This document shows positions 9,433-59,876 of a DNA stretch of 64,000 nt, piece by piece. Numbering within the stretch: position 1 is the first letter of the stretch; each line of letters starts with the position of its first letter. The translations under genes were made by a program, and so were the position numbers. The notes under the pieces are model-generated. The model made no database searches, was not told where the DNA came from, and saw only the letters and a program-made list of their open reading frames with translations. The DNA comes from Macrostomum lignano (lineage: Eukaryota): the NCBI GenBank assembly GCA_002269645.1, contig NIVC01001407.1, forward strand, positions 124,001-188,000, read 5' to 3'.

Positions 9433-10227
9433 CTGCGTTAAATATTAACAAAGTTTAGCATTTCTTAAAGATGTGGAACTACTAATTTTTCTATCATCTC
9501 TAATACGTAATGCATCTCACCCTCTAATAATCTCACCAATTCTATTTCACACTCTGTTATATCTCATCCCCTATAGTATACTGTATATCTCTCCTATACT
9601 ATCCCCACGCCTACAACTCGTACCCCTACTATCTCACCTCTATTCTCTTCCCTCTGCTATATCTCACCCCCCCTACTCTGTCACAATCTACTACATATGC
9701 ATGTATCTCAGCCTCTAGTATACGTACTATCTCACTTTTACTATCCCACCATTACTATCACACCTCACTATCTCTCTACCATCTATCACACACACTCAGC
9801 AATACAATACGCAGTTAAACTCACCCAAGATGAAGACAACAAAACAGATAAACACACCACTGGCATTTCTCAAATCCGATTTGCTAACTGATCCAAACAT
9901 GTTTATGAGTATTGATCGGCCAAGTTTTTTGCTTTAAAAAAACTCACAAGCATCCTCAGCGTCGCGTCTTTCACAGTCGGTAATATATAGCCGAAAATGC
10001 AGACAGAGAAACAGTCACATATAAGGATGTACTCACCCTTAACCTATTGTTTGCCCCAAATCTATTCTCCTCTTACCTCTACCCGCTCAATTTTGCTCTC
10101 TCTATTGAAAGCCTACCCTAAATTGCCATGACAACTGCAAACAGCTTGGATTCCTAATGACAATGGGAACAAATAACGATTAATTAGTGATTGATTTTTA
10201 TTGCTAGCTTATTGCAAATAACAAGAG

Positions 10228-10375
10228 CCGTAGCTTAATTAGTGGTCTAGTGCGGCGCTCTAATGTGCTAGCGGTCCAGGCTCGATTCCACGGGGTCTCT
10301 CATGACTCTGACATTAATTTTTATGCTAAATTAAATAAGTCAGGGCAGCTATAAACTCTTGTGTGTGTGTGTGTG
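10228..10375 (+). mobile_element. Possible short tRNA-headed SINE ending in (GT)n
   Basis: GTAGCTTAATTAGTGGTCTAG (A-box-like), GGCTCGATTCC (B-box-like), (GT)n tail. Confidence 0.35.
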
Positions 10376-10786
10376 CCTGTGCGTATGACTGCGTACGTAT
10401 CCGCGCGCTTGTGTGCCTGCTCAGGGGAGTCGGCGGAATGGGGCAGTAATGCCTCTCGCCGGTTGTGTGCCAATGTCACTCAAATTTATAACAAAACTAA
10501 AATGAAAACCAAGCTCATTTTTAATTCAACGAACTGCTTTTACCACGGGACAATCTGTAAAGATTGCGGTCCCCAAATAATTTGCAATCAATTTTATTTA
10601 ACACTAACAAGAACAATATAGTAACAGTCATTTTCGCCGCAGTTCACAAGAAATACATCCATACTACTCGTAGAGCTTATGGTTGCCGAGTAGAGTTTAC
10701 TGATGCAGCTCCGGATGAACGCTCTGAAAAAAATATTTTTAGAAGTGCAGAATAAGGTTAACCAAGTAGGTGACAAATCGATAATA

Positions 10787-11510
10787 TCTCCCCTCCCTTC
10801 TCATCTCTATCCCCTCCCTTCTCATCTCCATCCCCTTCCCTTCTCATCTCCATCCCCTTACCTTCTCATCTCCATCCCCTCCCTTCTCATCTCTATCCTC
10901 TTCCTTCTCATCTCCATCCCCTCCCTTCTCATCTCCCCTCCCTTCTCATCTCTATCCCCTCCCTTCTCATCTCTATCCCCTCCCTTCTCATCTCCCCTCC
11001 CTTCTCATCTCTATCCCCTCCCTTCTCATCTCTATCCCCTCCCTTCTCATCTCTCTCCCCTCCCTTCTCATCTCTCTCCCCTCCCTTCTCATCTCTCACC
11101 CTTCCCTTCTCATCTCTCACCGTTTCCCTTCTCATCTCTCACCGTTTCCCTTCTCATCTCTCACCCTTTCCCTTCTCATCTCTCACCGTTTCCCTTCTCA
11201 TCTCTCCCCCTTCTCATCTCTATCCCCTCCCTTCTCATCTCTATCCCCTCCCTTCTCATCTCTATCCCCTCCCTTCTCATCTCTCCCCCTTCTTATCTCT
11301 ATCCCCTCCCTTCTCATCTCTATCTCCTCCCTTCTCATCTCTATCTCCTCCCTTCTCATCTCTCACCATTTCCTTTCTCATCTCTCACCCTTCCCTTTTC
11401 ATCTCTCACCCTTTCCCTTCTCATTTCTCGCCCTTCCCTTCTCATCTCTCACCCTTACCCTTCTCATCTCTCACCCCTTCCTTCTCATTTCATCTCTCTC
11501 TCCTTTCATC
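10787..11510. repeat. CT-rich degenerate tandem repeat (CCCTCCCTTCTCATCTCTATC-like, ~20-22 bp)
   Basis: Polypyrimidine tract of reiterated CCCTTCTCATCTC units; the overlapping long ORFs are low-complexity artefacts. Confidence 0.9.
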
Positions 11511-11591
11511 TCATAATATTAGTCATTACAATTTTAGTTAGCACATTTCCTTATACACACTGAGAACAGCGGCCCACAGGCATGAAGATTG

Positions 11592-13744
11592 ACTGACATG
11601 TCCGTAGCCGCCTTCCAGCCGCACCGAAATTTTAAATGAGTGCCCCAGGTGTAATTTTTATAAAAATGAATCACATATGCTCTTAATTGATTACCCCAAA
11701 ACATGTTTCGCATGGTTGATGCTGTTTCTATGAAAATCTGGCAGTGAAAGTTGGCTTTAGGGCGGCTGAAGGGCGGCTGGAAGGGGGCTAGAGAATTGCT
11801 CTGTATTGGCGCAGTATAATTGTGCCCCAAATGGAAAAAAAATTAGATGCAAGTCTTATCTTTAATATGCACAATAAACTTTGGTTCATTGGCTTTTATT
11901 TCTTAGAGTAGTGTGACCTTTAGTTTGAAATTCAGCATTCCAATAGGTAAAAGCGTGCCCCAACCATTTTCTTGACTAGCGGCTAATGCCCCAATGCGGT
12001 AAAAAGAAGCAGGGTCAAAATTTTACTGTATAAGTAAATTTCTGTACATGCCCCACAATTTCCAACTGAGTGGCGAAGTGAAATAACTTGATTGTCACTC
12101 AGACACCAGTCATTACGACTTACAGTCGAGATTACGACTTTGCAATCGTAAAAAATTAAATTCTAACTTGTTGCAAAGTGCTTGTCTACTAATAGACTAA
12201 TGGACCAATTCATAAATTACTATCAATGTGACAATGCCCATGTTGATGGATATGTAATTGTATGTGTCCTTTAGAAATATTAAAAACTGGCATGACAATT
12301 GTCACTTTAAGATTGTAATCAAATCACTCAATATATTCTATAATCTATATATATGTCTATGTATATTAACACTCAGTAACACTAATATTTCAAACAATAA
12401 TAGCTAGCTATGGCTATACATACAGAATTCTACATATGCACCTTCTTATGAATTATGTCATGTATGACTCAAATTTATTCAGAATATGATGCATGCAACT
12501 AGAGGAGCTTTATATTAAATCCAACTTTATTGTCACTTTTCTATACAATTAACAAAGTAATAATAATACTAGGCCTAATAGCTAGACTAGCTATTGATAT
12601 TTAAAAATACAAAATTCTAGTAGCTAGGGCCTATTTACAATCTATTTTCTATTTTCTATTTCTGTTTCTATTCTATTTACAAGTTAGGCCTTACAAGCTA
12701 AATATTACCATTAGCTTCAATATAGTTAGAATGCTTCTTTTTTACTCATTCTTAGCTAACTTGAAAAAAAAAGTTCAATAGGCAAAACTTTTAGTCTTTT
12801 TTTAATTAACATACATATAGCTATGGCTCATTTTTAATATAATTGTTTGAGTTACAAGTCTAGAATGTAATGTATTCTTTAAATCAATAACAAAAATAAT
12901 TATATTAATCTCCAAATTATATATTTGATAGATAACTCATATTCACAAAAAAACAAAATCTGTTTCTGTGTATAATATACACTCAACATCAAGTGCTTCC
13001 ATGTTAGTTCCACTTGTGCCTTTTTAAGTTTTATATCTGAGTAAATAATCTCATATAAACATGATAATTCATGTTTTTCATGTTTCTTGTCAATATCTGC
13101 TACTTCCACTCATGTCCTTTCATATCTGAGTAATGTATATCATATAAACATGATAATTCATGTTTTTCATGTTTCTTGTCAATATCTGCTACTTCCACTC
13201 ATGTCCTTTCATATCTGAGTAATGTATATCATATAAACATGATAATTCATGTTTTTCATGTTTCTTGTCAATATCTGCTACTTCCACTCATGTCCTTTCA
13301 TATCTGAGTAATGTATATCATATAAACATGATAATTCATGTTTTTCATGTTTCTTGTCAATATCTGCTACTTCCACTCATGTCCTTTCATATCTGAGTAA
13401 TGTATATCATATAAACATGATAATTCATGTTTTTCATGTTTCTTGTCAATATCTGCTACTTCCACTCATGTCCTTTCATATCTGAGTAATGTATATCATA
13501 TAAACATGATAATTCATGTTTTTCATGTTTCTTGTCAATATCTGCTACTTCCACTCATGTCCTTTCATATCTGAGTAATGTATATCATATAAACATGATA
13601 ATTCATGTTTTTCATGTTTCTTGTCAATATCTGCTACTTCCACTCATGTCCTTTCATATCTGAGTAATGTATATCATATAAACATGATAATTCATGTTTT
13701 TCATGTTTCTTGTCAATATCTGCTACTTCCACTCATGTCCTTTC
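11592..13744. repeat. Left TIR of the MULE (~1.45 kb unique + 8 x 89-bp array)
   Basis: Reverse complement of the right end. Mirrored ORFs 11534-11830/22533-22781 and 12900-13109/21254-21463 are near identical; one C/T difference seen at a CpG. Confidence 0.93.
13050..13744. repeat. 89-bp tandem array, 8 copies (left TIR inner end)
   Basis: CCACTCATGTCC recurs at 13106, 13195, ... 13729 (period 89). Confidence 0.95.
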
Positions 13745-13977
13745 TTATATGAGTAGTAATTCATGGTTTTCCTGTTTTTCTTATCTTCAATGCTAGGATT
13801 CACTTAACCAAGTCCAGTATTTGCTTAGTAGAGTTTGTTTAAGTAAGAAAAAGTGAAGTAAATGTGACTGTACACTTGTCTTTTATGTCACTATGTTTCT
13901 GTCAACGCTTTGAAGTTATTTTCGATGTTATGGAAGCATGTTTTTGCATGTAATAAAAGTTATATAATTCATTTCAG

Positions 13978-14943
13978 GCTTTCATTAACGATCCTTTTTC
14001 GGTCTTTGAGCCAAAAGGAGAACTGCCCTTACCCTTTCCGGACAAGGAAGTGGTCGTCGGCATCAGACTAACAGCGACTTGTGTTCGTGTAGCTGCTCAG
14101 ATCCTAAACATTCCACTGTCCGGTTCTCTGCTTCGAAGGGCTCCTGGAACGAATGTCAATTATATTTCGGAAAATGGTTTAGCTCTGGCCTACCGTGATG
14201 GTGTAGCAATTTTTCGACATAGAAAAAAATCATCGAATTGTCACCAAGACCATTCCAAGCGAGCGAAAGCGGCTGCTGCCGGAAATGAGTGGTTGAAACA
14301 TAATGGTTGGAAGTTGGAAGAAGAGAGTTCGCAGCTTTCAGCTGTGATTGCAAAGCAGCATGTAACAAAGGCACTTGATCATCTGGAGTTGGCTGTATCC
14401 GTAGCTCCTGATGAAATACGTAGTATAATTCAAATATCTGTTGCATGTGTGCATCAGGTAAAAAACGTGATTGATTCTACTCAATTGTCTACTGCGAGGG
14501 GAGCAGAATTTGAGCAGGGAGAGTCAGAAGTGGAAAAGCAGCGAGAACTGGAGAAGCAGCAAGAGCTGGAGAAGCAGCGAGAACTGGAGAAGCAGCGAGA
14601 ACTAGAGAAGCAGCAAGAGCAGGAGAAGCAGCAAGAGCTGGAGAAGCAGCAAGAGCTGGAGAAGCAGCGAGAACTAGAGAAGCAGCAAGAGCAGGAGAAG
14701 CAGCAAGAGCTGGAGAAGCAGCGAGAACTGGAGAAGCAGCAAGAGCTGGAGAAGCAGCGAGAACTGGAGAAGCAGCGAGAACTGGAGAAGCAGCGAGAGC
14801 TGGAGAAGCAGCGAGAGCAATTATCTTTATCGAGAAAGCGATCGGCAAAATTTGTGAACACTGACAAGAAAGACGGAAATACGACAGCCAAAATAAGTCG
14901 CACAAGTAGGCCTTTGCGCCCAAGACATAAGTTTATCAACTAA
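13978..14943 (+). CDS. MULE accessory ORF2 with (ELEKQR/Q)n coiled-coil repeats; 5' exon not found
   Basis: Open frame from the acceptor TTTCAG|GCT (13978) through the tracked ORF 14050-14943; 18-bp repeats at ~14533-14820; convergent with the transposase. Confidence 0.6.
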   Translation, partial: AFINDPFSVFEPKGELPLPFPDKEVVVGIRLTATCVRVAAQILNIPLSGSLLRRAPGTNVNYISENGLALAYRDGVAIFRHRKKSSNCHQDHSKRAKAAAAGNEWLKHNGWKLEEESSQLSAVIAKQHVTKALDHLELAVSVAPDEIRSIIQISVACVHQVKNVIDSTQLSTARGAEFEQGESEVEKQRELEKQQELEKQRELEKQRELEKQQEQEKQQELEKQQELEKQRELEKQQEQEKQQELEKQRELEKQQELEKQRELEKQRELEKQRELEKQREQLSLSRKRSAKFVNTDKKDGNTTAKISRTSRPLRPRHKFIN

Positions 14944-16202
14944 ACTTATGTTGCGAATTGCAGGGACGAGAATAATTTGATGATTTTTGCTCACCATATG
15001 AATGCGCTTTTGTGCAATCGAAACTTGTGAATATAACTCAATAGCTTAAATTGACACCTGTCAATTAAGGGTGTACTCCTTATGCTTCATGTTTATAAGT
15101 ACGAGTTGCCATACGATCATCTTACGCAGGAGATAGCGGACCCCTGATACCAATAGTACTACACTTTTTTATTTAGCTTTCGCTTTGATGTGCTTTTGCA
15201 TTGTCATTACACATAACTTCACTCATATACGAGCCTACGTTTGACAACTTGATCGTAAGGTGAAACGTTTAACCGTGTGAGCTCTCCATTAATATATTCT
15301 ATTCAGCTTCTATTTTACTTATTATCCTGCAAAAAAGTGCTCACTCTTCAGTTCAAAAACTACTTCCCTTCAGCATTTGAAAAGTTAGTAGCATGATCAA
15401 TTCGTAAACTTTTCTTTTCAGTTTTCGCCATATCAGTCAGTTATCAATTATACTAATACAGTACTCGTATACTATGTTTATGACGACTGACAAAACGAAT
15501 AAACAAGTCGGACCGTCAAAATCTGATTGAAAAATATTCAGAACCGGAACTTGAAATTCGTAAACAGTTCTTTATATATTTACTTTGTGGATAAACAAAT
15601 TTAGGCTACGAAAAAAGATGGCTTATGCATTTGAGGCCCGATGGTAAGTTCAATAATAATCAACACCTTGGGCATACAAGGTAAAACAAAACATACAAGG
15701 CGAACGAGCGTACTACGTTGCTATTTAATAAAAAAGATTGTCAAATCAGGCGCTATCAAGCACAATAAAGCCTTCCTACTAGGCCTATCCTAAGAAGTCA
15801 TGCCAACGGATTCATAGTCAGTTAAAATGTTAATCGATTAATGTGCAGAATGTTTCGTGTGCACCCTGACTAATCAATCCTGTTTATAAGAGATTTTAAA
15901 AATCTTGTAGGAACCGATGATCTAGTGGCAACGACAAACTACTTAACAAAACAATAACTGGATTAGTAGGATTAGTAGCAGCAAAAATTATGATACACAT
16001 GTGGGTCATTTATATAGAAAAGAAAGTAAAAGCAGTGATGTGACAAAAAGAATGAAAAAAGGCGCTGAGACAAAGACATTTTGCCATTCAAGCAGGGTGC
16101 GGCGGGAAGACGCCTTCATGTGGGTGCGTGGTATGACATCAGACATGAGTAGGCACTGGTAAAGCGAAAACCCGTAGCTTATCCAAGCACTAGCGAACAT
16201 AG

Positions 16203-19200
16203 TTAAAACAAAGCGTACATCGCCAGGTTTAGGCGACCTACATTTCGTTGCCGTCGCAGCGCACCACTGGTAGTCCCGAGGTCGTCGTAGTTTAGGACGC
16301 TACCGTCGTCAGAATGTATAGTTGCTACCCAGTGCGCACGCTCTGCTTGAAAGTATGTCGAGCAGAACAGTCTGTATCTGAAAAATATTTAGTTGTACAT
16401 AACATAATGATACATTTAATTTAATAAACAAGTTACTTATTGAACAAAAATGAGTGTCTATTTCTAGTAAAGTCAATATCTAGAACTGCAAATGTGTTCT
16501 CCGTCTGACAGCATAAAAATTGTACTCGTAGCTTGTTGATCGATAAGTAAAATAATATTGATCGACAGTGTATATACATACTACTAGTACTTGACACTTC
16601 CTTTTTCGGGTCCAGCACAGCAGCCCTGCATTAGCTAGCTAACACAAGTAATCAGACGATAGTAGAGTACATATATAGAGTGCAAGAACTCACCGAGCAG
16701 GGCTGTTCCGAAAGGGAGTTACCTCTCGTTCTCCCAATGAGACTCGAACAGTTCTATCGACAGAGTCGGGTACAGCAACAACAAGCAGCGGAGGCAATTC
16801 TGAGGAGTACGTCGGTGGCAATACATCTCGCAAACTGTTGCAGTGGCAGCATTCGCGAACGCCAGACTCACGGAAAACAGTGCAGATAAAGCTGTAGGGT
16901 GACTCGATTGGCCCTTCCTCGTGTTGGATTACAAGCCCAGAAAAAAATGATTCCAGTTGTCGATGGCGGCAGGCATCGTTGCGGCAGATGCTTTTTATCA
17001 GGAATAAATGGCTATTTCCAAGTAACTCCAGAACTATGTCCAGTTCGCTGCTTTCGAGATTTCCGTCAACGATGCTGCTACCGTTTCGCCGCCAACGCAG
17101 AAAGCCTTTGCGCCAGAATGACTCTGTTTGTACTATCAGTGTAGCACGGGCATGCATGGCTTCTTGATCGGTGCGGCTAGCGGTAGCTTCTCTGCAGTAC
17201 CGGCCTAGCCGATGAAGCTCTTGAAGTCGAGACGCCAAAATGGCTTCACGGAATGTCTCGCGATCTCTATATGCAAATGCAATACCAGTGAGGAACCCAT
17301 CAACAGTACAAGTGTTGTGCAGCATTACTGTTACGAGTTTCCCATTAAAAGGTACACTGGTCGAGCGGCCACCATTTTTTAGAAGAGTAAATTGTTCCTG
17401 GGCATGATTTGTTAGGTCTCGAAGGAGAACACGCGTCGTAGCTGCAGTGTAGCGTCCTGAAGTGACCCTTCGTTTTTTATTAACTACCTCGGAGCTCAGC
17501 GAAGTTTCTTCAGTCGCTTCGTGGTCATTTAGCATTGATGTTAAAGGGTTCCTGAAAGAACGGGAGCCCTGTAAGTTAGAAATACGAGCATCGCCATCAA
17601 TTTCAGGCTGATCGGGGTGACTGGAACTGGAGTTCTCTAACTGCTCGTCGGCGTGACTGGAAGTCTCTGGCTGCTCAGAGTGACTGGAACTGGAGTTCTC
17701 TAACTGCTCGTCGGCGTGACTGGAAGTCTCTGGCTGCTCAGAGTGACTGGAACTGGAGTTCTCTGACTGCTCGTCGGCGGTGTGACCGGAAGTCTCTGGC
17801 TGCTCAGAGTGACTGGAACTGGAGTTCTCTGACTGCTCGTCGGCGGTGTGACTGGAAGTCTCTGGAAGTTCCATAAAGATCCGATGCAACCCCTGCAGGA
17901 GCCGACTTTGGTTAGCCAAGAAGTTCCTCATGGAGCTGTCCCGACCTCCGTGAAGCAGGTTTTTAACGATATTCATCCAGAGCTCCGTGTGGCCTTCCGT
18001 GAATCCCTGAGCGTCACGAGAAACACTTTTGAATGCACCGCTATTGGACGCAGCATATCTCACGGGATCCAGCATGATACCACACCAAAGTGGCAGGTAT
18101 GGCATCACAACATTGGTAAGTTTACCAGCGAGACTGGGGCAGAAGTAAGGATTCGGATCTGGCGTCAGTTCACTCTCACTTTGAACAACTTGTGCTTCGG
18201 CACTAGCTTTCACCTCATTGTGCAATGCATCCGCTAGATGGAAGAATGGCGAAGCTCTCTTCAATGTCGTATCCGGCATTACGTACATGAAACTTTCGGG
18301 TGGAACGAAAACTCCGTCTCCAAGTTGATCTGCAGCGGCTGCGTGCAGAAGAGCGAGTGACGAGTCGACACTCCTCCGAGATGGGCAAAGCAGAAGCCGT
18401 AGAAAGCTTTTGTACACTTGCTGTACCTGGTGCAAGCTGGTGCATCGTAGCAAGGCACCGAAGAAATGCTTCCAACCATTCCTGGCTTCCGGATTCCTGC
18501 AATTCGCCACATCAGGCCAATCACAAAACTCGCGCATGATATGGCTCCGGCCGAAGCCGATCAACGTAAATTTCTGCAGTTCTTGATAGCTTAATTTAAA
18601 CGATAGAACGGCATAGCAGTGCCGCAGAAAAGGAATGATTTCCATGCCGTGAATGCCCATAAGGAGAGCCCGCAAAGTAGGCAAATTAAAATCAAGGGTG
18701 ACCTGAGCCACGCGAAGATTTTTTACTGATAATCTTGCTGCCGTGATCCAGGAGTCAAATACAAACTTTAAAGTTGTTCCCGTCTGCGAAGACGATAAAA
18801 GTTCCATAACGGCAACGGGTTGCGCTCCAGTTTGAGGATGACGCAGTACCACAGCGTGGTAGTAAACATCCTTCTGCTGACTGTCTTTGGGTTTTGAAAT
18901 AGGCGCTCCGGTTGAATCCATGCCCAGTACGATTGGCTCACCGTTCGCTTGCATCGAACGCAACACTTCAAAAGCACTGTTCAACCAGAGAGGCACGAAT
19001 TGGGGTTCCGATGCGCCAAATTGCACACAGACATTCCTTGCGTAAGCAGGTTGCATGCTTTGTCCTTGAATAATAAGATCCAGCAGAGTATCAGACGACT
19101 GCCGGTCCTGATGTCGTTGCCTACTCGCAGCAATTCGTAGTACATTAGGAGATGGCAACAACCGAATGTCCCCATCTGCTGCGATTTCTGCCCTTACCCG

Positions 19201-19934
19201 CGTGGCACTTGAAGAGCAAACTCTTTTGGCCAATTCAATACGTCGCTCCCCACATAGAGGACGTGCCTTGGTAGCATGCTTAGTAGGATTCGTTTTGACT
19301 TCAAGCGAACAGAGCAACCTGTTTCCAGAGTGGAGCACTTTCAAACGGAATAGGCCAGTGCAACCATCAACATTGCAGTAAACATCTGCAGATATGTAGC
19401 CTGCATTGTGCTTATGCCTGCGCATACACAGGGTGCACTTGAGTGATGAAGAGAACGACAAAAGAACATAGTCATGCCAGCTCTTTTTCAGATTGCCACT
19501 ACCATCGAAAACGTGGTCAATGTCAACGAAGCTTTGGTGTAATTGCGTTTCAGCTGTTGTACTGCTGGAAGACCTGAAATCAAAACGAAGAAGACGAAAT
19601 TATAGATGACTATGTCAAAGTTATAAGAAAAGCCAAAGTAAGAGCGCATCAAGAAAAGCAATACTTACGCTGTATTGCTCGGTATCTCACTCAAAGAATT
19701 TCCGGTGATGACAGCCTGAACTTCAGCGATGATTTTGCTTCTTCTGAATTTGTCATAGAGCCATCTGCGACTTGATTCGTTAGTGCCATCAAGACCAAGT
19801 AAATCAGCAAGTCTCTGAAGTATGCCATTCGCATTACGCCAAGTAGGAATCCCAGCGGAAAACTCAGCAACATCAACCTGACCAGATACAATGACCTTGA
19901 TGTCTTCCAGGGTCACTGAACTAGTGAAATTCAT
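16203..19934 (-). CDS. MULE transposase fused to a C-terminal USP-like (peptidase C19-type) cysteine protease, 3 exons, ~1106 aa
   Basis: Exons 19669-19934 (GC|GTAAGT), 16694-19573 (TTTCAG|G ... CG|GTGAGT) and 16203-16377 (TTTCAG|A); phases 2/2; 3321 nt. WRKY/GCM-like zinc knuckle (CTLC..YCNVDGC..H); MULE triad candidates LGMDSTG, VTLDFN, RSHIMR, TEGHTELW; Cys box LKNG..NTCTVDGFL; zinc fingers CRNDAC and CCHC; His box YRLFCSTYFQAERAHWVATIHSDDGSVLNYDDL..LAMYALF. Confidence 0.85.
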
Positions 19935-20029
19935 GGTTGGTGACAGTATCGACAATCACTTGAAGGGCCTGAAATGGAATAATCATAAAGGCTTTGTATG
20001 CATCCTTGAGTGTCAATATGATACACATC

Positions 20030-21312
20030 ACAGAAACATAAAACATGAATTATCGTTTTTATATGATATACATTACTCAGATATGAAAGGACATGAGTGG
20101 AAGTAGCAGATATTGACAAGAAACATGAAAAACATGAATTATCATGTTTATATGATATACATTACTCAGATATGAAAGGACATGAGTGGAAGTAGCAGAT
20201 ATTGACAAGAAACATGAAAAACATGAATTATCATGTTTATATGATATACATTACTCAGATATGAAAGGACATGAGTGGAAGTAGCAGATATTGACAAGAA
20301 ACATGAAAAACATGAATTATCATGTTTATATGATATACATTACTCAGATATGAAAGGACATGAGTGGAAGTAGCAGATATTGACAAGAAACATGAAAAAC
20401 ATGAATTATCATGTTTATATGATATACATTACTCAGATATGAAAGGACATGAGTGGAAGTAGCAGATATTGACAAGAAACATGAAAAACATGAATTATCA
20501 TGTTTATATGATATACATTACTCAGATATGAAAGGACATGAGTGGAAGTAGCAGATATTGACAAGAAACATGAAAAACATGAATTATCATGTTTATATGA
20601 TATACATTACTCAGATATGAAAGGACATGAGTGGAAGTAGCAGATATTGACAAGAAACATGAAAAACATGAATTATCATGTTTATATGATATACATTACT
20701 CAGATATGAAAGGACATGAGTGGAAGTAGCAGATATTGACAAGAAACATGAAAAACATGAATTATCATGTTTATATGATATACATTACTCAGATATGAAA
20801 GGACATGAGTGGAAGTAGCAGATATTGACAAGAAACATGAAAAACATGAATTATCATGTTTATATGATATACATTACTCAGATATGAAAGGACATGAGTG
20901 GAAGTAGCAGATATTGACAAGAAACATGAAAAACATGAATTATCATGTTTATATGATATACATTACTCAGATATGAAAGGACATGAGTGGAAGTAGCAGA
21001 TATTGACAAGAAACATGAAAAACATGAATTATCATGTTTATATGATATACATTACTCAGATATGAAAGGACATGAGTGGAAGTAGCAGATATTGACAAGA
21101 AACATGAAAAACATGAATTATCATGTTTATATGATATACATTACTCAGATATGAAAGGACATGAGTGGAAGTAGCAGATATTGACAAGAAACATGAAAAA
21201 CATGAATTATCATGTTTATATGATATACATTACTCAGATATGAAAGGACATGAGTGGAAGTAGCAGATATTGACAAGAAACATGAAAAACATGAATTATC
21301 ATGTTTATATGA
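20030..21312. repeat. 89-bp tandem array, 14 copies (right TIR inner end, inverted relative to the left array)
   Basis: GGACATGAGTGG at 20089 + n x 89 up to 21246. Confidence 0.95.
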
Positions 21313-22771
21313 GATTATTTACTCAGATATAAAACTTAAAAAGGCACAAGTGGAACTAACATGGAAGCACTTGATGTTGAGTGTATATTATACACAGAAA
21401 CAGATTTTGTTTTTTTGTGAATATGAGTTATCTATCAAATATATAATTTGGAGATTAATATAATTATTTTTGTTATTGATTTAAAGAATACATTACATTC
21501 TAGACTTGTAACTCAAACAATTATATTAAAAATGAGCCATAGCTATATGTATGTTAATTAAAAAAAGACTAAAAGTTTTGCCTATTGAACTTTTTTTTTC
21601 AAGTTAGCTAAGAATGAGTAAAAAAGAAGCATTCTAACTATATTGAAGCTAATGGTAATATTTAGCTTGTAAGGCCTAACTTGTAAATAGAATAGAAACA
21701 GAAATAGAAAATAGAAAATAGATTGTAAATAGGCCCTAGCTACTAGAATTTTGTATTTTTAAATATCAATAGCTAGTCTAGCTATTAGGCCTAGTATTAT
21801 TATTACTTTGTTAATTGTATAGAAAAGTGACAATAAAGTTGGATTTAATATAAAGCTCCTCTAGTTGCATGCATCATATTCTGAATAAATTTGAGTCATA
21901 CATGACATAATTCATAAGAAGGTGCATATGTAGAATTCTGTATGTATAGCCATAGCTAGCTATTATTGTTTGAAATATTAGTGTTACTGAGTGTTAATAT
22001 ACATAGACATATATATAGATTATAGAATATATTGAGTGATTTGATTACAATCTTAAAGTGACAATTGTCATGCCAGTTTTTAATATTTCTAAAGGACACA
22101 TACAATTACATATCCATCAACATGGGCATTGTCACATTGATAGTAATTTATGAATTGGTCCATTAGTCTATTAGTAGACAAGCACTTTGCAACAAGTTAG
22201 AATTTAATTTTTTACGATTGCAAAGTCGTAATCTCGACTGTAAGTCGTAATGACTGGTGTCTGAGTGACAATCAAGTTATTTCACTTCGCCACTCAGTTG
22301 GAAATTGTGGGGCATGTACAGAAATTTACTTATACAGTAAAATTTTGACCCTGCTTCTTTTTACCGCATTGGGGCATTAGCCGCTAGTCAAGAAAATGGT
22401 TGGGGCACGCTTTTACCTATTGGAATGCTGAATTTCAAACTAAAGGTCACACTACTCTAAGAAATAAAAGCCAATGAACCAAAGTTTATTGTGCATATTA
22501 AAGATAAGACTTGCATCTAATTTTTTTTCCATTTGGGGCACAATTATACTGCGCCAATACAGAGCAATTCTCTAGCCCCCTTCCAGCCGCCCTTCAGCCG
22601 CCCTAAAGCCAACTTTCACTGCCAGATTTTCATAGAAACAGCATCAACCATGCGAAACATGTTTTGGGGTAATCAATTAAGAGCATATGTGATTCGTTTT
22701 TATAAAAATTACACCTGGGGCACTCATTTAAAATTTCGGTGCGGCTGGAAGGCGGCTACGGACATGTCAGT
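20030..22771. repeat. Right TIR of the MULE
   Basis: Reverse complement of 11592-13744 with six extra array units. Confidence 0.93.
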
Positions 22772-22853
22772 TGAAGATTGATGATATCCACCTGGACCGT
22801 ACAGTATAAACGATTTCCAATCCCCCCTCAATCAAGTTAATTTATCAGTCTTA

Positions 22854-24531: not shown

Positions 24532-27500
24532 CACGCCTCCCCTGAAGAGAGAGTTTGGTCAATGAAATATACCCTAAAAAATATTGATTTCCCATGAATC
24601 TATGACCCAACAGACGTCCAAAAAAGCAATAGTTGAAATCCTATCGCATTGTCTGCATAGTGTACAGGTATGCTAATTAGTACAGTGATTTTTAGTACCA
24701 GGTAGGTACTACAAGAAGAACAAGAAGGTCTGAGAGGACATGGCAACCATCCTGCAGCAACGAAAATGCTAAAACAAGGTAGAATTTACGTTTCTGTTCA
24801 TTCTCTGTCACTTATGGTTCATTAATAGTGTTTTTATTACCTGTCCATACCTGACTGAGATTAATTTACACATGGAGCTTGTGTTTTCCTAGTAACGTTT
24901 TCAATTTTTTAAAGTTTTTGGAGCAGTGCAGCGATAGACTGGCACTGGGAGTCAAAACAAAGCCAGTAACTATTAACGAGAGAAAAGTTTCACAAAAACA
25001 GAAAGCATAAGCAGAGGTCATTGGGAATTACAAGCTTATTTTGGCGGCAAATGACTACACGGGTAGAATAACTAGAGTAAAATAGCTAGAATAGTTGTTA
25101 AAGCTAGTACAATATTTAGTAAAACAGAAAGTTCTTGCAATTTGCGAAGATAAGCCTACAGAATTTCTGGAAGCCTTGTGTGCTGCAGAATAAAAAAGAC
25201 ATGCATTGACTGATGTAGAGCAAACCCGAATTCAAGTTCCAGCTACTGTGATACAGTACCATTACATGTACTTCAAGCACTTCATTTCATAGAAGGCCTT
25301 AAAACCTGCGACAACTTTCTGCTTTACCCAATACAAACATACGAGTTTAGTGGGTTGTCAAAATACAAGCATTGAATGTAACAGCAAAACCAATGTACTA
25401 ACTACTAACTACTTTTTTCAACAGTTTACTTGTAGTTATCTTGGCAGTAGTAAATTGGAATTTGCAAGTTACAAGTTATGACATATTTGGCTCAGATGTG
25501 AAATGAATTATAGTTTATGATGGATTGCAGTAGACACGTGCTATACTGAGGATGATTTAGGGGGCGCTTATAGCGCTGCCAGGTGGCTTCGAAGTCACTG
25601 TGGGCTGATTCAACAGCCTGTTCACTAAAGCTGCCAAGCCCCTTGCCATACTTGCCGCAGAACGCTGGCACATGGTCAAAAAGCGCGTGCATCTTTGGCG
25701 TAACTGAAAGCTCGAGGTACCTACATGTCGTCTGGAAGCGAGCAATGTAGAGACTGTAATCAGCTGCCAGACTTTGGCCAAAGCAAGCTTCGCGCACAGC
25801 GTTGAAGTCTTGAAGTGCTGTTGCGTAGAGCTTCAGGTGTGGAGGCAGCACGCTCCACAGCTCACTCGCCTTCAGAAGGAGCTTTTTGCACGCTGGGCCC
25901 TCCAGGCAACCTCCATGATACTGCTGCCTGCAGATGCCTGCTTCATAGGCCCACTCGTAGGCCTTGTTGCCACCCCAGCTTGCATTGAGAGCATCAAGCA
26001 ATCGGTTCACAATGCCAAGCATCATGTGCAGCTCTGGCGGTGGTACCACGTCCAGCAGTTCAGCAGAATCGCTCCCAGGTAGCAGTGGAGGCTGGACGCA
26101 ATTGGCAAAGTTTTTGGCTAGAGGCTGGTGTCCACCAGCTGCCTGAAACTCACTTGCCAGGTGTCGAATTGAGCCGAGCGTCCTCCTTTGTGCTGGTACT
26201 TCCCATGGAGGCCTGCCCTCACAGTACAGGCAGGGATGCGATGAAGAATGGCTCTGGATCCCGCTGATTATGTTTGCCAGTTTAAAATCGCAGGCCAACG
26301 TGAAGTAAATGGAGCTGATGTCGATGGTTGACATTAGTACACTAACGTTCTGGTAGCATTCTTTGACATCCTCAACAAGGGCCAGGATGAGGATCTTTTT
26401 CACTCCAGAGTCCATAAATCGGTTAAATTGGGCAGACGAAGTGCATCCTCTGCCATCCACGGTAACGCTGACGCACACCTTTAAGGAATTGCCTCCTCCA
26501 TCAATCGCAAGTTTCACTCTCTGGTGCATCTCAGCAGTGCCTCTCGAGTTACTGACATGCGCCAGAAAAGCGTATACATCCCGGCAGAACACGACAGACC
26601 GTTCAATCACACACTCTTGTCCATTAGGCTGTTTGCGGAAAAACTGCCGCTGCTCAGCTGTAAAAAACTTGGCGACACTCTGACCTTCAGCAAACAGAAA
26701 CTCCTTCAGCCCAGACTGCACGGCCTTTTTGCTGCCGGACGCTTCTCTGATCACTTGAGCCGCACGTAGCGTCTGACTGGTGCTGAGGTTGAGTGCAGTC
26801 TTTACGGCTCGCATAGTGCTATGCTGGACCGACGCAATCTCGGTAGTTGATGTACCAGCCACTTGAACTTGGAGTGGGCGCCCACCTGTGCCAGAAGTCA
26901 GGCTTTCAGTTGCTAAGGAGCCAGAAGAGGTGGCTACACCCAGCTTCTCACGCAGAAGACCGCAGGCTACGTGCTCCCTTGAGTAGGGGCTTAGGGCATC
27001 AAGATAGCGCAGTTTTGCCGCCTGTCCACACTGGTGCCTCAATCCACGTGCCACTGGCGATGAGCACGTCTCACAGCGTTTGACGACACTGTCTCCCATC
27101 GGCCCAGGTGCCTTATTTGGAGGGCGACCAAGTGGCGTCGCAATACCAGCAGCAGACTCATCTGGCATGAAAGGGTGATATACAGCCACATTCTTGTTGG
27201 CTCTGCTGGAGCCCACATGGCACACCCAGCAGTTGCAATCGGGGCGTTCGCGAGTGAGTGGCGGAAGACAGCGCAGATCTGCAATAACTTGCTCGTAGGG
27301 CATTTTTGGCGGCAGAGGTGTTGGTGCAGGGCTGCTTTGTGACATCAGCTTGATTCTGCAGGAGTTGCAGATGCTTAAAGGCAGAAATCCACGATGGTCA
27401 GCGAAGCCTGGCAGCACATGGCATTCAATCAGCGCTTCAAGAGTGGCTGTCAGCGGTCGGTCTCCCTTCCGAAAGCACAAGATGCACACACATCTTCGAT

Positions 27501-28420
27501 TTTCTTCATGTGAGCGCTTGTTGTTTGGCATTGTTCTGGAGCAGCCAGTGTCGCGGTATTTTTTTATTATTATTTCTTGTATTTCTACCTGCACGCTCAA
27601 TTAGTCTAATATATTGCATGCATATTTATGTAGCTCATACGTACATTCCCCCAAATTATTGATCGCCCCACCCCATATCACACTCAATCGTGTATTGTAC
27701 GCTTTCACTCAGCTTATAAATGTCGACCTAGAGTATCTCACTCAAATATACCCTTTTCATTTTCATAGCTAGTTGTCTCACTTACAGTAACTTTAATTTC
27801 AGTAAAAGTTTAGTAAAAGTGTAGCAGCTGCTGCTTGCTATTTCTTTTTGTTCTGAAGAAAACACTGGAATTAACTTGTCTCCTAGTTCTGACTGCCTCA
27901 TCATCTGGAGATGTCTATGGGCTAAATAGCTTATTGAAACAGAAAGAAAAGTCTGCAGCCAGAATATTGAATTCAATTTATTTTGAGCCACGAGCATATA
28001 CATGTAAATACGCTCGTACAATGATAAGTGTGAAGATACACGCCCTGGTGTGAATTCAGCACAATATAGTATGCAAAAACATAATTTTCAGGTGTACACA
28101 GGTATGGACAGGTAATAAAAACACTATTAATGAACCATAAGTGACAGAGAATGAACAGAAACGTAAATTCTACCTTGTTTTAGCATTTTCGTTGCTGCAG
28201 GATGGTTGCCATGTCCTCTCAGACCTTCTTGTTCTTCTTGTAGTACCTACCTGGTACTAAAAATCACTGTACTAATTAGCATACCTGTACACTATGCAGA
28301 CAATGCGATAGGATTTCAACTATTGCTTTTTTGGACGTCTGTTGGGTCATAGATTCATGGGAAATCAATATTTTTTAGGGTATATTTCATTGACCAAACT
28401 CTCTCTTCAGGGGAGGCGTG
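24532..28420. mobile_element. Chapaev DNA transposon 1 (3,889 bp), intact
   Basis: CAC...GTG termini; 322-bp TIRs (24532-24853 / 28099-28420) in which no mismatch was seen; 4-bp TSD GCTA; the homologous site is uninterrupted in Helitron copy 2 (~31390). Confidence 0.92.
25492..27531 (-). CDS. Chapaev transposase, 679 aa, intronless and intact
   Basis: N-terminal H-x7-C-x2-C..P-x3-C-x2-C (SHEENRRCVCILC..LPLSICNSC), CNCWVC, a second C2HC finger; catalytic-type motifs AIDGGG, ACDFKLANI..HPCLYC, PPELH, TPKMH, SEQAVESAH. Confidence 0.9.
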   Translation of the reverse strand: MPNNKRSHEENRRCVCILCFRKGDRPLTATLEALIECHVLPGFADHRGFLPLSICNSCRIKLMSQSSPAPTPLPPKMPYEQVIADLRCLPPLTRERPDCNCWVCHVGSSRANKNVAVYHPFMPDESAAGIATPLGRPPNKAPGPMGDSVVKRCETCSSPVARGLRHQCGQAAKLRYLDALSPYSREHVACGLLREKLGVATSSGSLATESLTSGTGGRPLQVQVAGTSTTEIASVQHSTMRAVKTALNLSTSQTLRAAQVIREASGSKKAVQSGLKEFLFAEGQSVAKFFTAEQRQFFRKQPNGQECVIERSVVFCRDVYAFLAHVSNSRGTAEMHQRVKLAIDGGGNSLKVCVSVTVDGRGCTSSAQFNRFMDSGVKKILILALVEDVKECYQNVSVLMSTIDISSIYFTLACDFKLANIISGIQSHSSSHPCLYCEGRPPWEVPAQRRTLGSIRHLASEFQAAGGHQPLAKNFANCVQPPLLPGSDSAELLDVVPPPELHMMLGIVNRLLDALNASWGGNKAYEWAYEAGICRQQYHGGCLEGPACKKLLLKASELWSVLPPHLKLYATALQDFNAVREACFGQSLAADYSLYIARFQTTCRYLELSVTPKMHALFDHVPAFCGKYGKGLGSFSEQAVESAHSDFEATWQRYKRPLNHPQYSTCLLQSIINYNSFHI

Positions 28421-28617
28421 GCTACGAAGAAATGCGTATTTCCTTGGTTGTTAGACTGCTGCAGACTGGTGGTGGAGCTGGGGAATGGAGATACACAAAT
28501 TCCTCTCAGGGCTGCTAATTGGCCAGAAAGATGACGCGATTAAAGCATGAGAAATGATAACAAATAACAACCATGATAGTATTACTTCCCATCCCATGCA
28601 CAAACTGGCTTTCGAAG

Positions 28618-29049
28618 CAGGGATCGGCAGATTTTTATCTCAAAGGCCAGATAAAGAATCCAGCTCATGGCTGCGGGCCAGATGAGAGTGAAAAGGAAAA
28701 GGAATAGACTATTAGAAAGGGAGGAGGGGCGAGAGGGGGATAAGAGAGCAGATAGAAGATAACAGGAGAGACGAGGGGGTTGAGGAGAGAACAGAGAATA
28801 TGGGACGAAGAAGCGAGAGGGGGGAGAGAGAAGGGAGACGAAATAGTAGAGGTGAGAAGATGGAGAGAGGAGGGGAGAGATGAGACAGAGGATCGATGAG
28901 AGAGGAGAGTGGAGAAGAGTGAGAAGAGATGAGAGATGAGAGAACAGAGAGGCAAATGAGAGAGCATCGAGAGAAGAGATTAGAAAGGATAGAGAAGAGA
29001 GGAGATAAGAGGGGGAGAGAGAGGAGTGAGAAGAGAGGAGATAAGAGAT

Positions 29050-29114
<65 letters not shown>

Positions 29115-30188
29115 GAGAAAGAAGAGAGGACAAAGGAGAGATGATAGAGTAAAGGGAAGAGGAGGAGAGAAAAAAGAGATGAGATTGTAGAGATGAGGGA
29201 GATGAAAGGAAAGATGAGAGAGTAGAGATGAGAGATGAAGGAAGAGAGAGCAGAGTGCAGAGAGACGAGAGAAGAGAATAGAGGGGTGAGAGTATAGAAG
29301 AGGGAAGAGAAGAGAGGAGTAAGGAAAGAGAGGAGTCAGAAGAGGAGAAAGAGAAGAGTACACAGTAGAGAGGAGAGTAGAGATGACAGAAGAGAGAGGG
29401 ATATGAGAGAGCAAAGATGAGAGTGAACAGACGATATAAGAGAGGAGAGAGGAGAGTGGAGAGAGAAGAGAGAAGACAAGAGAGTGAGAGAGTATAGAAG
29501 AGAGAAGAGAAGAGACGAGAAGAAAGAAGAAAGGAAAGAGAGTCCTGAGTCAAAAAAGGGGAAAGAGAGGAGTACAAGAAGAGAGAGGTGAGAGAACATA
29601 TGAGAGTAAAGATGACAGATGAGAGAGGGGAGATGAGAGAGCAGAAACCAGAGTGAATAGACGAGAGATGGGAGAGTAGAGAGAAGAGAGGAGAGATAAG
29701 AAATAAGAGATGAGATGTGGGGACAAGGGAGATGAGAAGTGAGTGAGGAGAGAGGAGGGGAAGGGAGAGAATTGAGAGGACAGGGGAAATTGGTGAAAAG
29801 GACGAGAGAGGAGAGGAAAGAGAGGAGAGATTAGAGAGAAGAGAGATAGGACAGGAGAGAGCAGAGAGAAGAGAGGAGAGAGAGAAGAGAGAAATGAGAA
29901 AAGATAAGAGAGAGAGAGAAGATAAAAGAAGAGAAATGAGATATAAGAGAGCGAAGACGAGAGAGAAGGGAGGTGAGAGAAAAGAATAGAGGGGAGAGGG
30001 AAGAGACGAGAGAAGAGGGGAGAGAGGAGAGAGGACAGAGAAGAGAAGAAAGAAGAGATAAGAGGAGAAAAAGAGGAGACGAGAGACGTGAGAGAAGATA
30101 GGAAACAGAAAAGAAGATGGAAGTTTTAAAGGATGCAAAGTACATAGGGAGAGGCAGAGGCAGAGGCCAGAGTTTGCCTGACATTCTG
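28618..30188. mobile_element. hAT-Charlie-like MITE with a ~1.45-kb GA-rich expansion, inside Helitron copy 1
   Basis: Ends CAGGGATCGGCAGA..GGCCAGATA..GCGGGCCAG and AGTTTGCCTGACATTCTG resemble the 183-bp MITE at 59983-60165; interior is almost purely purine. Confidence 0.65.
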
Positions 30189-30388
30189 CGCAGCACCCCA
30201 GCCAACAATATCAATGTTTGCTTCAAATCCTAATTTTACACGAATCTATACTCTATTTTATGTTTAACTCCATCCTAACTATTAACAAGTTTTTGTTTGA
30301 GTTTGACCTCAGATTTTAGATTACATGCAAAAATAATTCTGGGGAATGGAGTTCCCCGGGCTCAAAATCCGCGGGTTTCAACAGCTTG

Positions 30389-32465
30389 TCTCTACATATA
30401 AAAATCAAAACTCTGTCTGTCTGTCTGTCTGTCTGTCTGTGGACAAATTACTTCGCTATGGACTCCCAAACCGCTCAACCAAATTACACCAAACTTTACA
30501 CCCACCCTAAACTTACTACGGAGAATGTCTTAGGCTACCTTTAAATTTCCTAGACTCAAGTCTTCCTACCTAAAAGTGCAAAAAACTGCTCAAAATGCGC
30601 GATTTTTTCACTTAATCCTCCATAGCGCCGCTCCACTTCTACCGATTCTCTTCAAATTTGACACAGATAATCTTTAACTATTTTGGCACAATCATGTAAA
30701 ATTTCGAGTCTCAAAGTTAATCCTGAGCGGTGCTGTGCACTTTTAAAGTTAGGCTGTTTTTTTCAGCGTAGCAACCACCCCAACCTCCGCCCGCCTGCCT
30801 CTCTTACCCGATCTGGGCCCAGATGTGTAAAAGAGTTTCAAAATTGACTAACTTTCAGCTGCCATAAGTTTGCTTCACGTAAAGCGATTGACTTCAAACT
30901 TGACACAATTCTTCATTGACCCATTCTCTATCTAAATGTAAAGTTTCAACTCTGTAACTCAACCGAAAAAGAAACTGTAAGCATGTGAAGTTTGTCTGCT
31001 TTTTCTGTTGTTTGTGCCACTCACTCACTCATTCCCCCAGAGCCAGACGAAGGATCAGGCGGTAGGACTGAATGTACATAGCAAATGTACAGTGTTTTGG
31101 AATAACTTTATTTATAGCCTTCTCTGCACCCCCGCGCGTGGAGAGGCTACGTTTAGCCATGACAGTTTAGTGAGAAATTCTAACCACTGCCCTCCCCTCT
31201 GTATTGGCAAACTCTGCAGCAGTTTAACAGTGGATGGCAATTGGCAAATCGAGGCAATCCAGCATGGTTTGTAAAAGCGAAAGATTTATGAAAAGGCGAT
31301 GCGATGCAATGAAATACAACCCTACTAAATTAGGCACACCACACACCATGGAAATTTTAAGTTTCTCTTAAAAGTACTCTAAAATTTAAATGGCCTCCTA
31401 AGAAATGCGTATTTCCTTGGTTGTTAGACTGATGCAGACTGCAGTGGAGCTGAAGATACACAAATTCCTTTCAGGGCTGCAAATTGGCAAGAAAGATGAC
31501 GTGATCAAAGCATGAGAACAACCATGAGAGTAGTACGTCCCACAAACTGGCTTTCGAAGCAGGGATCGGCAGACTTTTACTTCAAAAGCCAGATAAAGAA
31601 TCCAGCTTATGTGCGGGCCAGATGAGAGTGGAAAGGAGAAGGAATAGACTAATTAGTATTAGAAGAGAGGCGAGGCGAGAGGGGATAAGAGAAAACATGG
31701 AAGATAAGAGGAGAGACAAGTGGTGAGGAGAGAGCAGAGAAGAAGGGAGGAAGAAGCGAGAGGAGGGGAGAAAGGAGGGAGAGGAAAGAGTAAATGTAAG
31801 AAGAGGGGAGAGATGAGACAGAGGATCGATGAGAGGAAAGTAGAGAAGAGTGAGAAGAGAGTAGAGATGAGAGAGCAGAAAGAAGATAACAGAGGGTCAA
31901 GAGGAGGAGAGGAGAGGAGAGAGTAGAAAGGATAGAGAAGAGAGGAGATAAGAGGGGGAGAGAGGAGTGAGAAGAGAAGAGATAGAGATAAGAGAGGGGT
32001 GTAAGAAGAGGGGAGAAAGGAGAGATGAGATTGTAGAGATGAGACAGATTAAAGGAGAGATGAGAGAGTAAAGATGAGAGATGAAAAAGGTGAGAGGAGA
32101 GTGCAGAGAGACGAGAGAAGACAAGAGAGGGAGACAGTATAGAAGAGGGAAGAGAAGAGAGGAGGAGAGGAGAAAGGAGAAAGGAAAGAGAGGAGTCAGA
32201 AGAGGTGAAAGAGAAGAGTACAGAGGAGATAAGTGAGAGAACGTATAAGAGAGTAAAGATGACAGATGAGAGAGCAGAGATGAGGGTGAACAGACGAGAG
32301 ATGGGAGAGTAGAGAGAACAGAGGAGAGAGAAGAGAGAAGAGATTACAGAGACTAGAGGAGAGAGGAGAGACAGGGAGAGAGAAGAGGAAATAGGAGAAT
32401 GAAGAGGGGAGAGAGTAGAGAGGAGAAGAGAGATGGGGAGGAGAGATAAGAGAGAGAGAGAGAGG

Positions 32466-32512
<47 letters not shown>

Positions 32513-33269: not shown

Positions 33270-33320
33270 TGTTCCAATAAGTGAAGAATCAAACCCCTGA
33301 CCTTTCATTTGTGAGTCCTT
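33270..33320 (-). mobile_element. 5' (tRNA/B-box) half of the split SINE
   Basis: TGTTCC..GAATCAAACCCCTGACCTTTC..GTGAGT matches the reverse complement of the B-box region of the 886 copy and continues from GGACACAAAAA at 23528. Confidence 0.7.
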
Positions 33321-55304: not shown

Positions 55305-56377
<1,073 letters not shown>

Positions 56378-59768: not shown

Positions 59769-59876
59769 AGCAAACGGACAACCAATGAGGATAGACTCTC
59801 TCAACTACACTACCCAATCTTGAACGCAGCCGCTTGCCTGCAAAGCAACGCAGGACAGGCTATAGGACAGCAGGCG

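Follow-up and report, generated by a model that had tools for sequence, protein, structure and literature searches.

Does the flatworm Macrostomum lignano carry a DNA transposon that encodes its transposase and a complete ubiquitin-specific protease (USP)-like domain as one polypeptide? This question is raised by a 64,000-nucleotide stretch of contig NIVC01001407.1 (assembly GCA_002269645.1, forward-strand positions 124,001 to 188,000), hereafter called the window and numbered from its first letter. A first-pass annotation of this DNA had proposed a Mutator transposase fused to a USP-like deubiquitinase that becomes visible only upon splicing. We find that the window contains an 11,180-bp element at 11592-22771, which carries a three-exon gene on the minus strand. 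From sequence comparisons and a structure model we conclude that the C-terminal domain of the predicted protein most probably adopts the USP fold (MEROPS C19-like), with a complete conserved catalytic triad.

The spliced coding sequence joins 19934-19669, 19573-16694 and 16377-16203 into 3321 nt, encoding 1106 amino acids without internal stops. Every coordinate of the three-exon model put forward in the first-pass annotation, with an open reading frame (ORF) of 923 amino acids as the middle exon, proved correct, and the spliced sequence is open throughout. Exon 1 (19669-19934) begins with the ATG at 19934 and has a length of 266 nt, or 88 codons plus 2 nt, leaving a phase-2 donor, GC|GTAAGT, which is joined across the 95-nt intron 1 (19574-19668, GTAAGT...TTTCAG) to the TTTCAG acceptor ahead of 19573. 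The 923-aa ORF occupies 16690-19461 and ends in CG|GTGAGT, where the exon ends at 16694 and the donor lies at 16693-16692. The following intron 2 (16378-16693; 316 nt, GTGAGT...TTTTTCAG, phase 2) terminates at 16378 with the acceptor TTTTTCAG, and exon 3 (16203-16377) adds R-YRLFCSTYFQAERAHWVATIHSDDGSVLNYDDL...LAMYALF* with its stop at 16205-16203. Downstream of the putative transposase part, exon 2 encodes an acidic Ser/Glu-rich linker (17602-17865), built from four units of a 63-bp tandem repeat (Tandem Repeats Finder, TRF), and then the first part of the USP-like domain (16694-17385), which is recognized from family alignments, profile matches, an AlphaFold model and Foldseek.

Junction 1 is present in the NCBI protein BOX15_Mlig001973g1 (P0001; 943 aa, 97% identical), the sole close database relative of the window protein, which reads ...SEIPSNTA|SSSSTTAETQ... 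as predicted. For junction 2, the comparison extends to four distant loci (L001, L003, L004 and L005), in all of which the apparent stop of the ORF is likewise a phase-2 donor, CA|GTAAGT. Their last introns measure 795 nt in L001, ~75 nt in L003, 84 nt in L004 and 70 nt in L005, each followed by a (T)nCAG acceptor. The exon after that acceptor, homologous to exon 3 of the window, opens with H-Y-x-L-x-G-[VI]-[ST]...GHY, and three of the contigs continue into YD(D/G) after GHY, L003 ending before it. Position and phase of the junction are identical in the window and these four relatives of 24-34% identity, and the window exon aligns to the His box of USP15 and USP8. Among copies so divergent, a shared intron position, phase and encoded motif lie far beyond chance; the comparison strongly supports exon 3 as a real exon that is under selection. 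Because the His box occupies this separate last exon, the complete protease is predicted to be encoded only by the spliced mRNA.

Retention of the last intron leads to an in-frame stop inside the donor at all five loci (window 16693-16690, an immediate TGA; L001 3384-3386; L003 ~1730; L004 1112-1115; L005 1201-1203), since the donor is a phase-2 GT[AG]AGT. The unspliced message would encode a protease lacking its His box, and could in this way serve regulation.

The residues expected of a USP active site are found in both exons that contribute to the domain. The predicted catalytic Cys844 (17310-17308) lies in the Cys box HNTCTVDG, which aligns weakly to GNTCYMNSILQCL of USP8 and of which N-T-C is kept in nine of nine relatives. 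The His box reads YRLFCSTYFQAERAH1064W...NYD1080DL, with His1064 encoded at 16334-16332 and Asp1080 at 16286-16284; the His is conserved in five of five scorable relatives and the Asp of YD(D/G) in four of four. Family conservation hence bears out the triad that had been read from the window sequence as Cys (NTC), His (AHW) and Asp (YDD). This also holds for the proposed fingers subdomain with its four-cysteine ribbon: C952-x4-C957 (16986-16969) is present in all nine relatives and C997-x2-C1000 (16848-16840) in five of five, and the region aligns to the fingers of USP15, USP9X and USP8. A LPPLLVV strand is encoded at 16797-16777, and the thumb helices fall in the exon-2 part of the domain.

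The domain deviates from canonical USPs ahead of the Cys box, where the GLxNxG lead-in is replaced by L-[LI]-x-[NT]-G-G and a hairpin of ~20 residues. This motif (LLxNGG in the window; residues 819-824, 17385-17368) precedes Cys844 by ~20 residues, and its L40, G44 and G45 in domain-alignment numbering are invariant in all nine relatives at 24-34% overall identity. Three readings of it are conceivable: a USP lead-in that has been displaced, a tight turn, or a site of self-cleavage at Gly-Gly.

The identity of the domain to solved USP structures is ~12%. A five-sequence profile of the spliced domains, compared with all PDB sequences, gave 18 matches at E<=10, and all 18 are USP catalytic domains (best USP15 at 1.2e-4, followed among others by USP9X, USP8, USP2, USP21 and USP12). 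With a nine-sequence profile, 23 of 23 PDB matches are USPs, again led by USP15 (3.5e-5). In the USPs, the alignments extend across the cysteines of the fingers, the strand LPPVLVV, Y.L..V..GHY and FDD. Searching PDB sequences with the single full protein gave no match. Pfam scans with single sequences, covering the full protein, its C-terminal domain and five spliced members of the family, were uninformative; the family Peptidase_C98 was matched once only, at E 0.25 and 11.4 bits vs a cut-off of 27.

The AlphaFold model of the protease domain was computed from a nine-row alignment in which the homologue rows lack the last exon, and reaches a mean predicted local distance difference test score (pLDDT) of 61. 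Domain residues 40-240, comprising thumb and fingers, are confident, with a helix (65-80) that begins at Cys65, the Cys of the Cys box in domain numbering. Submitted to Foldseek, this partial model retrieves USP folds as 48 of the top 50 PDB matches, with probabilities up to 1.0 (USP14, USP30, USP18, USP2, USP12, Ubp8, USP4, USP8, USPL1, USP21, USP34 and PAN2). In the viral library BFVD, the top matches are giant-virus ubiquitin hydrolases (E 8.6e-5). The exclusive USP matches of the profiles in PDB, the Foldseek result and the conservation in the family together point to a USP fold for the C-terminal ~290 residues, in agreement with the USP-fold protease read from the sequence in the first-pass annotation.

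The distribution of relatives bears on how old the fusion is. An exhaustive HMMER search with residues 780-1106 against 1.84 billion representative proteins returned ten proteins at E<=1e-3, including the M. lignano protein itself and one spurious repeat protein; eight are distant relatives with 24-34% identity. The distant relatives lie on short environmental or Sequence Read Archive (SRA) contigs (SRR26456187, ERZ23498364, ERZ25069326, JGI 3300040801, JGI 3300055003 and GCA_041447055.1). Word-index searches with the full-length protein, the transposase half and the family alignment recovered nothing beyond the near-identical protein of M. lignano and a single JGI fragment, and a scan of metagenome contigs for further relatives gave 95 pattern matches, none of them confirmed. 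In three relatives (P0005, P0006 and P0007), a single ORF includes both TEGHTERW, where the transposase ends, and NTC, where the protease starts, pointing at a family trait rather than a one-off gene capture. On the strength of these alignments, the transposase-protease fusion is ancestral to a small, old and rare family. The linkage of transposon protein and complete USP-fold domain in a single polypeptide, as first proposed, agrees with both the open spliced coding sequence and the presence of both halves in one ORF in these relatives.

The boundaries of the element are sharp. An identical 9-bp target-site duplication (TSD), TGAAGATTG, lies outside both ends (11583-11591 and 22772-22780), and the element termini start with ACTGACATGTCC... 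The left terminal inverted repeat (TIR; 11592-13755, plus strand, 2164 bp) consists of a unique part (11592-13028) and an array of 89-bp repeats (13029-13755, 8.2 copies by TRF); the right TIR (20032-22771, minus strand, 2740 bp) consists of an array of 14.7 copies (20032-21334, TRF) and a unique part (21335-22771). In a self-comparison, 11592-13755 is 99.86% identical to the reverse complement of 22771-20608 over 2164 bp. The 89-bp arrays form the inner TIR ends, and both genes of the element begin 100-200 bp inside them, so that promoters or binding sites of the transposase may lie within these repeats.

A second copy of the element is found on contig NIVC01000212.1 (L006; 4760-18403, 13,644 bp), where it is 98.7-99.1% identical to the window copy and encodes BOX15_Mlig001973g1. 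Similarity ends at the same termini, the flanks are different, and this copy has its own 9-bp TSD, CCTAGTCAG. The two TSD-flanked copies with the same termini and different flanks establish the element as an intact, recently moved cut-and-paste DNA transposon. Relative to the window, the linker of the second copy contains one additional 66-nt (22-codon) repeat unit. A CGA to TGA nonsense change at codon 918, within the protease domain, explains why the annotated protein ends at ...FLRWR; the window copy is intact at this position. The overall layout is Mutator-like: the TIRs measure kilobases and hold 89-bp arrays, the TSD has 9 bp, and two genes converge from just inside the TIRs. Mutator-like elements (MULEs) are recognized by a TSD of 8-11 bp, typically 9, and long TIRs (PMC6446971), and the length of the TSD agrees with this at both insertions, TGAAGATTG in the window and CCTAGTCAG in the second copy.

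The N-terminal half of the protein shows several features that would suit a transposase. Residues ~100-657 (the putative transposase part of exon 2, 17866-19573) are conserved between the window and L001, P0005, P0006 and P0007. They include a Cys/His cluster at residues 135-196 (19437-19240) with the pattern C..C...GYI.AD..C....C.G.FRL...H...C, predicted as four strands in a low-confidence model. The candidate residues of a DDE (Asp-Asp-Glu) active site are D308 in LGMDST (18918-18916), D383 in TLDFN (18693-18691) and, as Glu, E615 or E619 in the invariant TEGHTE(L/R)W..VK (17997-17983); GRSHI contains H433. Judged by eye, their spacing and order suit an RNase-H-like core, beta1(D)-beta2-beta3-alpha1-beta4(D)-alpha2-beta5, followed by a helical insertion and the Glu helix, and the (S/T)-E-G-aromatic...K motif resembles that of early-branching MULEs (sequences from the supplement of PMC6446971). 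A Merlin/IS1016-like DD(36-38)E arrangement, prompted by the 8-9-bp TSD, was also considered and rejected, as the Glu 37 residues past D383 is not conserved in L001. The AlphaFold model of the transposase half, computed from a four-row alignment, had a pLDDT of 38 and was excluded from the fold search. For the WRKY/GCM1-like N-terminal finger suggested in the first-pass annotation, Pfam gave no FAR1, DBD_Tnp_Mut or SWIM match, and this model was unusable.

From N to C terminus, the polypeptide would thus present a Cys/His cluster resembling a DNA-binding region, a very divergent RNase-H-like core of the DDE type, a disordered acidic linker and a USP-fold protease equipped with C844, H1064, D1080 and a four-cysteine zinc ribbon in its fingers. 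We propose that the protease travels with the transposase and would act in trans as an isopeptidase for ubiquitin (Ub) or a Ub-like modifier (UBL), possibly SUMO. The marks that it removes may sit on the transposase itself or, at the donor and target sites, on chromatin or repair factors. The outcome would be a stabilized transposase, or a countering of Ub- or SUMO-dependent silencing. For the domains of the Ulp1, OTU and VTD types acquired independently by other transposons, the same role has been proposed. We assign a probability of roughly 0.7 to this reading of an isopeptidase for Ub/UBL that is tethered to the transposase and works in trans, either on the transposase or on chromatin and repair factors nearby; both the activity and the substrate of the USP-like domain are what we infer from its fold and conserved residues.

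Several observations weigh against this reading. In single-sequence scans, none of five family members reaches the Pfam threshold for UCH / Peptidase_C19 (PF00443/PF13423). The palm and His-box third of the domain is unmodelled, pLDDT dropping below 50 after residue 243, because the homologue rows lacked the last exon, and the TM-scores of the Foldseek matches are only 0.25-0.36. The usual oxyanion Asn at -5 from the catalytic Cys is absent. The only annotated copy, the second genomic one, is truncated by its nonsense codon. Nine codons differ between the two copies (four synonymous and five non-synonymous), which renders the ratio of non-synonymous to synonymous rates (dN/dS) uninformative and selection tests powerless. 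On the transposase side, neither the 558-aa region nor its L001 homologue gives a match at E<=10 in Pfam (MULE PF10551, Transposase_mut PF00872, DBD_Tnp_Mut, FAR1, SWIM, hAT, KDZ and the remaining families) or NCBIfam (IS256 and others), or any match in PDB. DDE chemistry is likewise something we infer, from the TSD, the TIRs and the motifs read by eye.

These negative results bear most directly on the affiliation of the element. A transposase-family profile gave no match to PDB sequences, and hhalign returned a probability of 0.2% for four MULE DDE domains, whose sequences were copied by hand from the PMC6446971 supplement with small errors possible. The latter result is a weak negative, as the query profile is very thin, with an effective number of sequences (Neff) of 1.6. 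The distance from the second Asp to the Glu is ~232-236 aa vs ~150 in the MULEs inspected, and among 1.8-5.8 billion proteins the relatives found come to one close one and a handful of distant ones. All of this would suit a separate cut-and-paste lineage, undescribed or diverged past recognition, that merely has a 9-bp TSD and long TIRs in common with MULEs. Yet the 9-bp TSD recurs in two independent insertions, and kilobase TIRs with two convergent genes make up the classical MuDR layout. The motif order hhhhD-x-T...hhhD...(S/T)-E-G-aromatic...K, judged by eye, is also like that of early-branching MULEs. We therefore consider a non-Mutator lineage the main rival but less likely, and lean toward membership in Mutator on account of the long TIRs, the TSD of 9 bp and a two-gene layout like that of MuDR. 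For the Mutator affiliation originally claimed for this locus, the 9-bp TSD and the kilobase TIRs, hallmarks that the first-pass annotation did not draw on, speak in favor; homology of the N-terminal 650 residues to MULE/MURA DDE domains was not found in Pfam, NCBIfam, PDB or with hhalign.

A second alternative concerns the target of the protease. The USP-like domain might cut its own polypeptide in cis, after the Gly-Gly of L-[LI]-x-[NT]-G-G, and so free the transposase. Coronavirus PLpro, which has a USP fold, cleaves at LXGG, and USP1 self-cleaves at an internal GG. The invariant L40, G44 and G45 in nine relatives and the conserved triad would agree with such a role, and so would the location of the motif on the linker side of the domain, just ahead of the first strand of the model. 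In contrast, the GG may mark a tight turn or correspond, in a displaced position, to the USP GLxNxGN lead-in, P4 is not Leu, unlike in Ub or PLpro sites, and cleavage so near a catalytic Cys has no direct precedent. Self-processing accordingly appears improbable next to an isopeptidase that acts in trans.

Similarly improbable is a C-terminal domain that serves as a non-catalytic Ub/UBL-binding or scaffold module, as in PAN2, or an intron 2 that works as a regulated switch restricting the complete protease to certain tissues. Precedents for splice regulation are the testis-specific Ulp1 isoform of Zisupton and IVS3 of the P element. PAN2 pseudo-USP structures are among the Foldseek matches and the canonical oxyanion Asn is missing, which would suit a non-catalytic domain; for a switch, the in-frame stop upon intron retention in five of five loci and the intron position conserved in distant copies could be cited. 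However, Cys, His and Asp are kept in every scorable relative, which is unexpected for a pseudo-enzyme, and the immediate stop is automatic with any phase-2 GTAAGT or GTGAGT donor.

A combination of these departures would be a long shot: an unrecognized superfamily-level lineage of eukaryotic cut-and-paste transposons, with a transposase that matches none of the described families, would from its origin carry a USP-fold protease that self-cleaves after GG, and the conserved last intron would decide on the active protease. If true, no transposon before it would have been seen to process a polyprotein in the manner of viral proteases with a USP fold. A domesticated host gene outside any active transposon, as the long intact ORF and the NCBI annotation as an ordinary hypothetical protein might suggest, is very improbable in view of the two copies, which occupy unrelated sites and each have precise TIR ends and a 9-bp TSD of their own, the 99.86% identical TIRs, and a nonsense mutation in one copy of the kind expected of neutrally decaying transposon copies.

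Proteases that act on Ub or SUMO have repeatedly and independently been acquired by transposons: Ulp1 by MULEs, CACTA, Zisupton and Ginger, OTU by Ginger and Helitrons, and VTD by Helentrons. To these three classes, Ulp1, OTU and VTD, the present element adds the USP fold as a fourth. C-terminal Ulp1 and OTU domains on transposases, as well as OTU and VTD deubiquitinases in Helitrons and Helentrons, are established (PMC2836005, PMC9741609), and the domain table of a MULE survey lists OTU and SET and no USP (PMC6446971). No Mutator-like or flatworm element bearing a USP domain came up in our search of the literature, which did not extend to Repbase and Dfam. The novelty suspected in the first-pass annotation is upheld to this extent, and is narrowed by the known Ulp1, OTU and VTD fusions and by a protein noted in 2010. 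The latter, Trichomonas vaginalis XP_001314237.1, was described in one sentence as transposase_11 plus Peptidase C19 (PMC2836005). We found no other earlier mention of a C19/USP domain linked to a DDE transposase, and no TIR, TSD or family analysis of this protein in the literature. Its superfamily is a different one (IS4/IS5-like), its host is a protist, and its C19 domain, unlike that of M. lignano, is recognizable by CDD.

Other known systems share single features with the element. The Ulp1 (C48) MULEs, such as plant KI-MULEs and the MuDR elements of hydra and lancelet (PMC2836005), likewise combine a Mutator layout with a papain-like protease of the Ub/SUMO-deconjugating type. In contrast to them, the M. 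lignano protease is predicted to have a USP fold with thumb, palm and zinc fingers, and its transposase is not recognizably MURA-like. Zisupton, a DNA transposon of fish with many exons and an 8-bp TSD, obtains a C-terminal Ulp1 domain via alternative splicing. It resembles the present element in its large transposase, N-terminal zinc-finger region and splicing-dependent C-terminal Ub/UBL protease, and differs in its Ulp1 domain and 8-bp TSD; the M. lignano protein has no Pfam KDZ/Zisupton match. Ginger1 (OTU/Ulp1) and the Helitrons and Helentrons (OTU, VTD) also are DNA transposons that independently acquired a deubiquitinase-type domain, and the VTD domains of zebrafish Helentrons are active deubiquitinases (PMC2836005, PMC9741609). 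Here, both the transposition enzyme and the protease fold are different from those of Ginger1, with its integrase-like DDE domain, and of Helitrons, with RepHel.

With the cellular USPs (USP15, USP8, USP2, USP21, USP12, USP14 and USP30) and USPL1, the M. lignano domain shares a Cys box of the form N-T-C-x-x-[DN]-[NS]-x-L, fingers with CxxxxC...CxxC, the LPP(V/L)LVV strand, a His box of the form Y-x-L-x-x-[VI]...(G/A)H(Y/W)...(Y/F)DD, and the thumb and fingers fold. Unlike them, it stays below every Pfam threshold as a single sequence and has no GLxNxG before the Cys box. Maize MuDR has two convergent genes that start just inside its TIRs, and it shares with the present element this arrangement, long TIRs and a 9-bp TSD. 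In M. lignano the TIRs exceed those of MuDR tenfold in length and include 89-bp arrays, and no similarity of either gene product to those of MuDR was detected.

USPs are the largest class of cellular deubiquitinases. Their addition to the Ub/SUMO proteases borne by transposons strengthens the case that removal of Ub or UBL generally aids transposition or escape from silencing. Neither half of the protein is recognized by standard domain annotation, so that such elements are invisible to routine surveys of both transposons and deubiquitinases. The window copy looks intact and young, with near-identical TIRs, an open ORF and a complete triad. As tools for transgenesis and for work on the germline exist for M. 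lignano, experiments on this copy are directly feasible.

The second gene of the element is an ORF on the plus strand (13960-14943) that converges on the transposase gene; its counterpart in the second genomic copy is annotated as a gene of 405 aa (L006, 15072-16289, minus strand). Its product contains a coiled-coil-like (EKQ[RQ]EL)n repeat, which is encoded by an 18-bp tandem array (14531-14818) and is more numerous in the second genomic copy. The ORF has no ATG, making an upstream exon or trans-splicing likely, and a possible acceptor lies at FQ|AFINDP. An NCBIfam scan of the product gave no match. In its position, the gene recalls mudrB of maize MuDR.

In the remainder of the window, a 21-bp tandem repeat, CCTTCTCATCTCTATCCCCTC, of ~25 copies (11000-11512) borders the insertion site on its left and shares sequence with the ORF 10703-11563. 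Base composition is very strongly skewed between the strands at 28-30 kb (GC skew +0.60, AT skew +0.46), at 32-34 kb (GC +0.49, AT +0.31) and at 10-12 kb (GC -0.41). These stretches (28001-34000 and 10001-12000) are probably purine/pyrimidine-rich repeats, and the ORFs 28582-30138 and 32196-32939 may be artefacts. ORFs of 358-702 aa at 25492-27600 (minus strand), 55254-56378 (plus), 58728-59804 (minus) and 61413-62504 (minus) have no Pfam match, and the one at 34936-36609 (minus) has a weak zf-AD match only; these long Pfam-poor ORFs may be further unannotated genes or transposon proteins. An ORF at 2919-3401 (minus strand) has a clear match to the Pfam family Lig_chan, the ionotropic glutamate receptor channel (E 3.8e-17), and is probably an exon of a host receptor.

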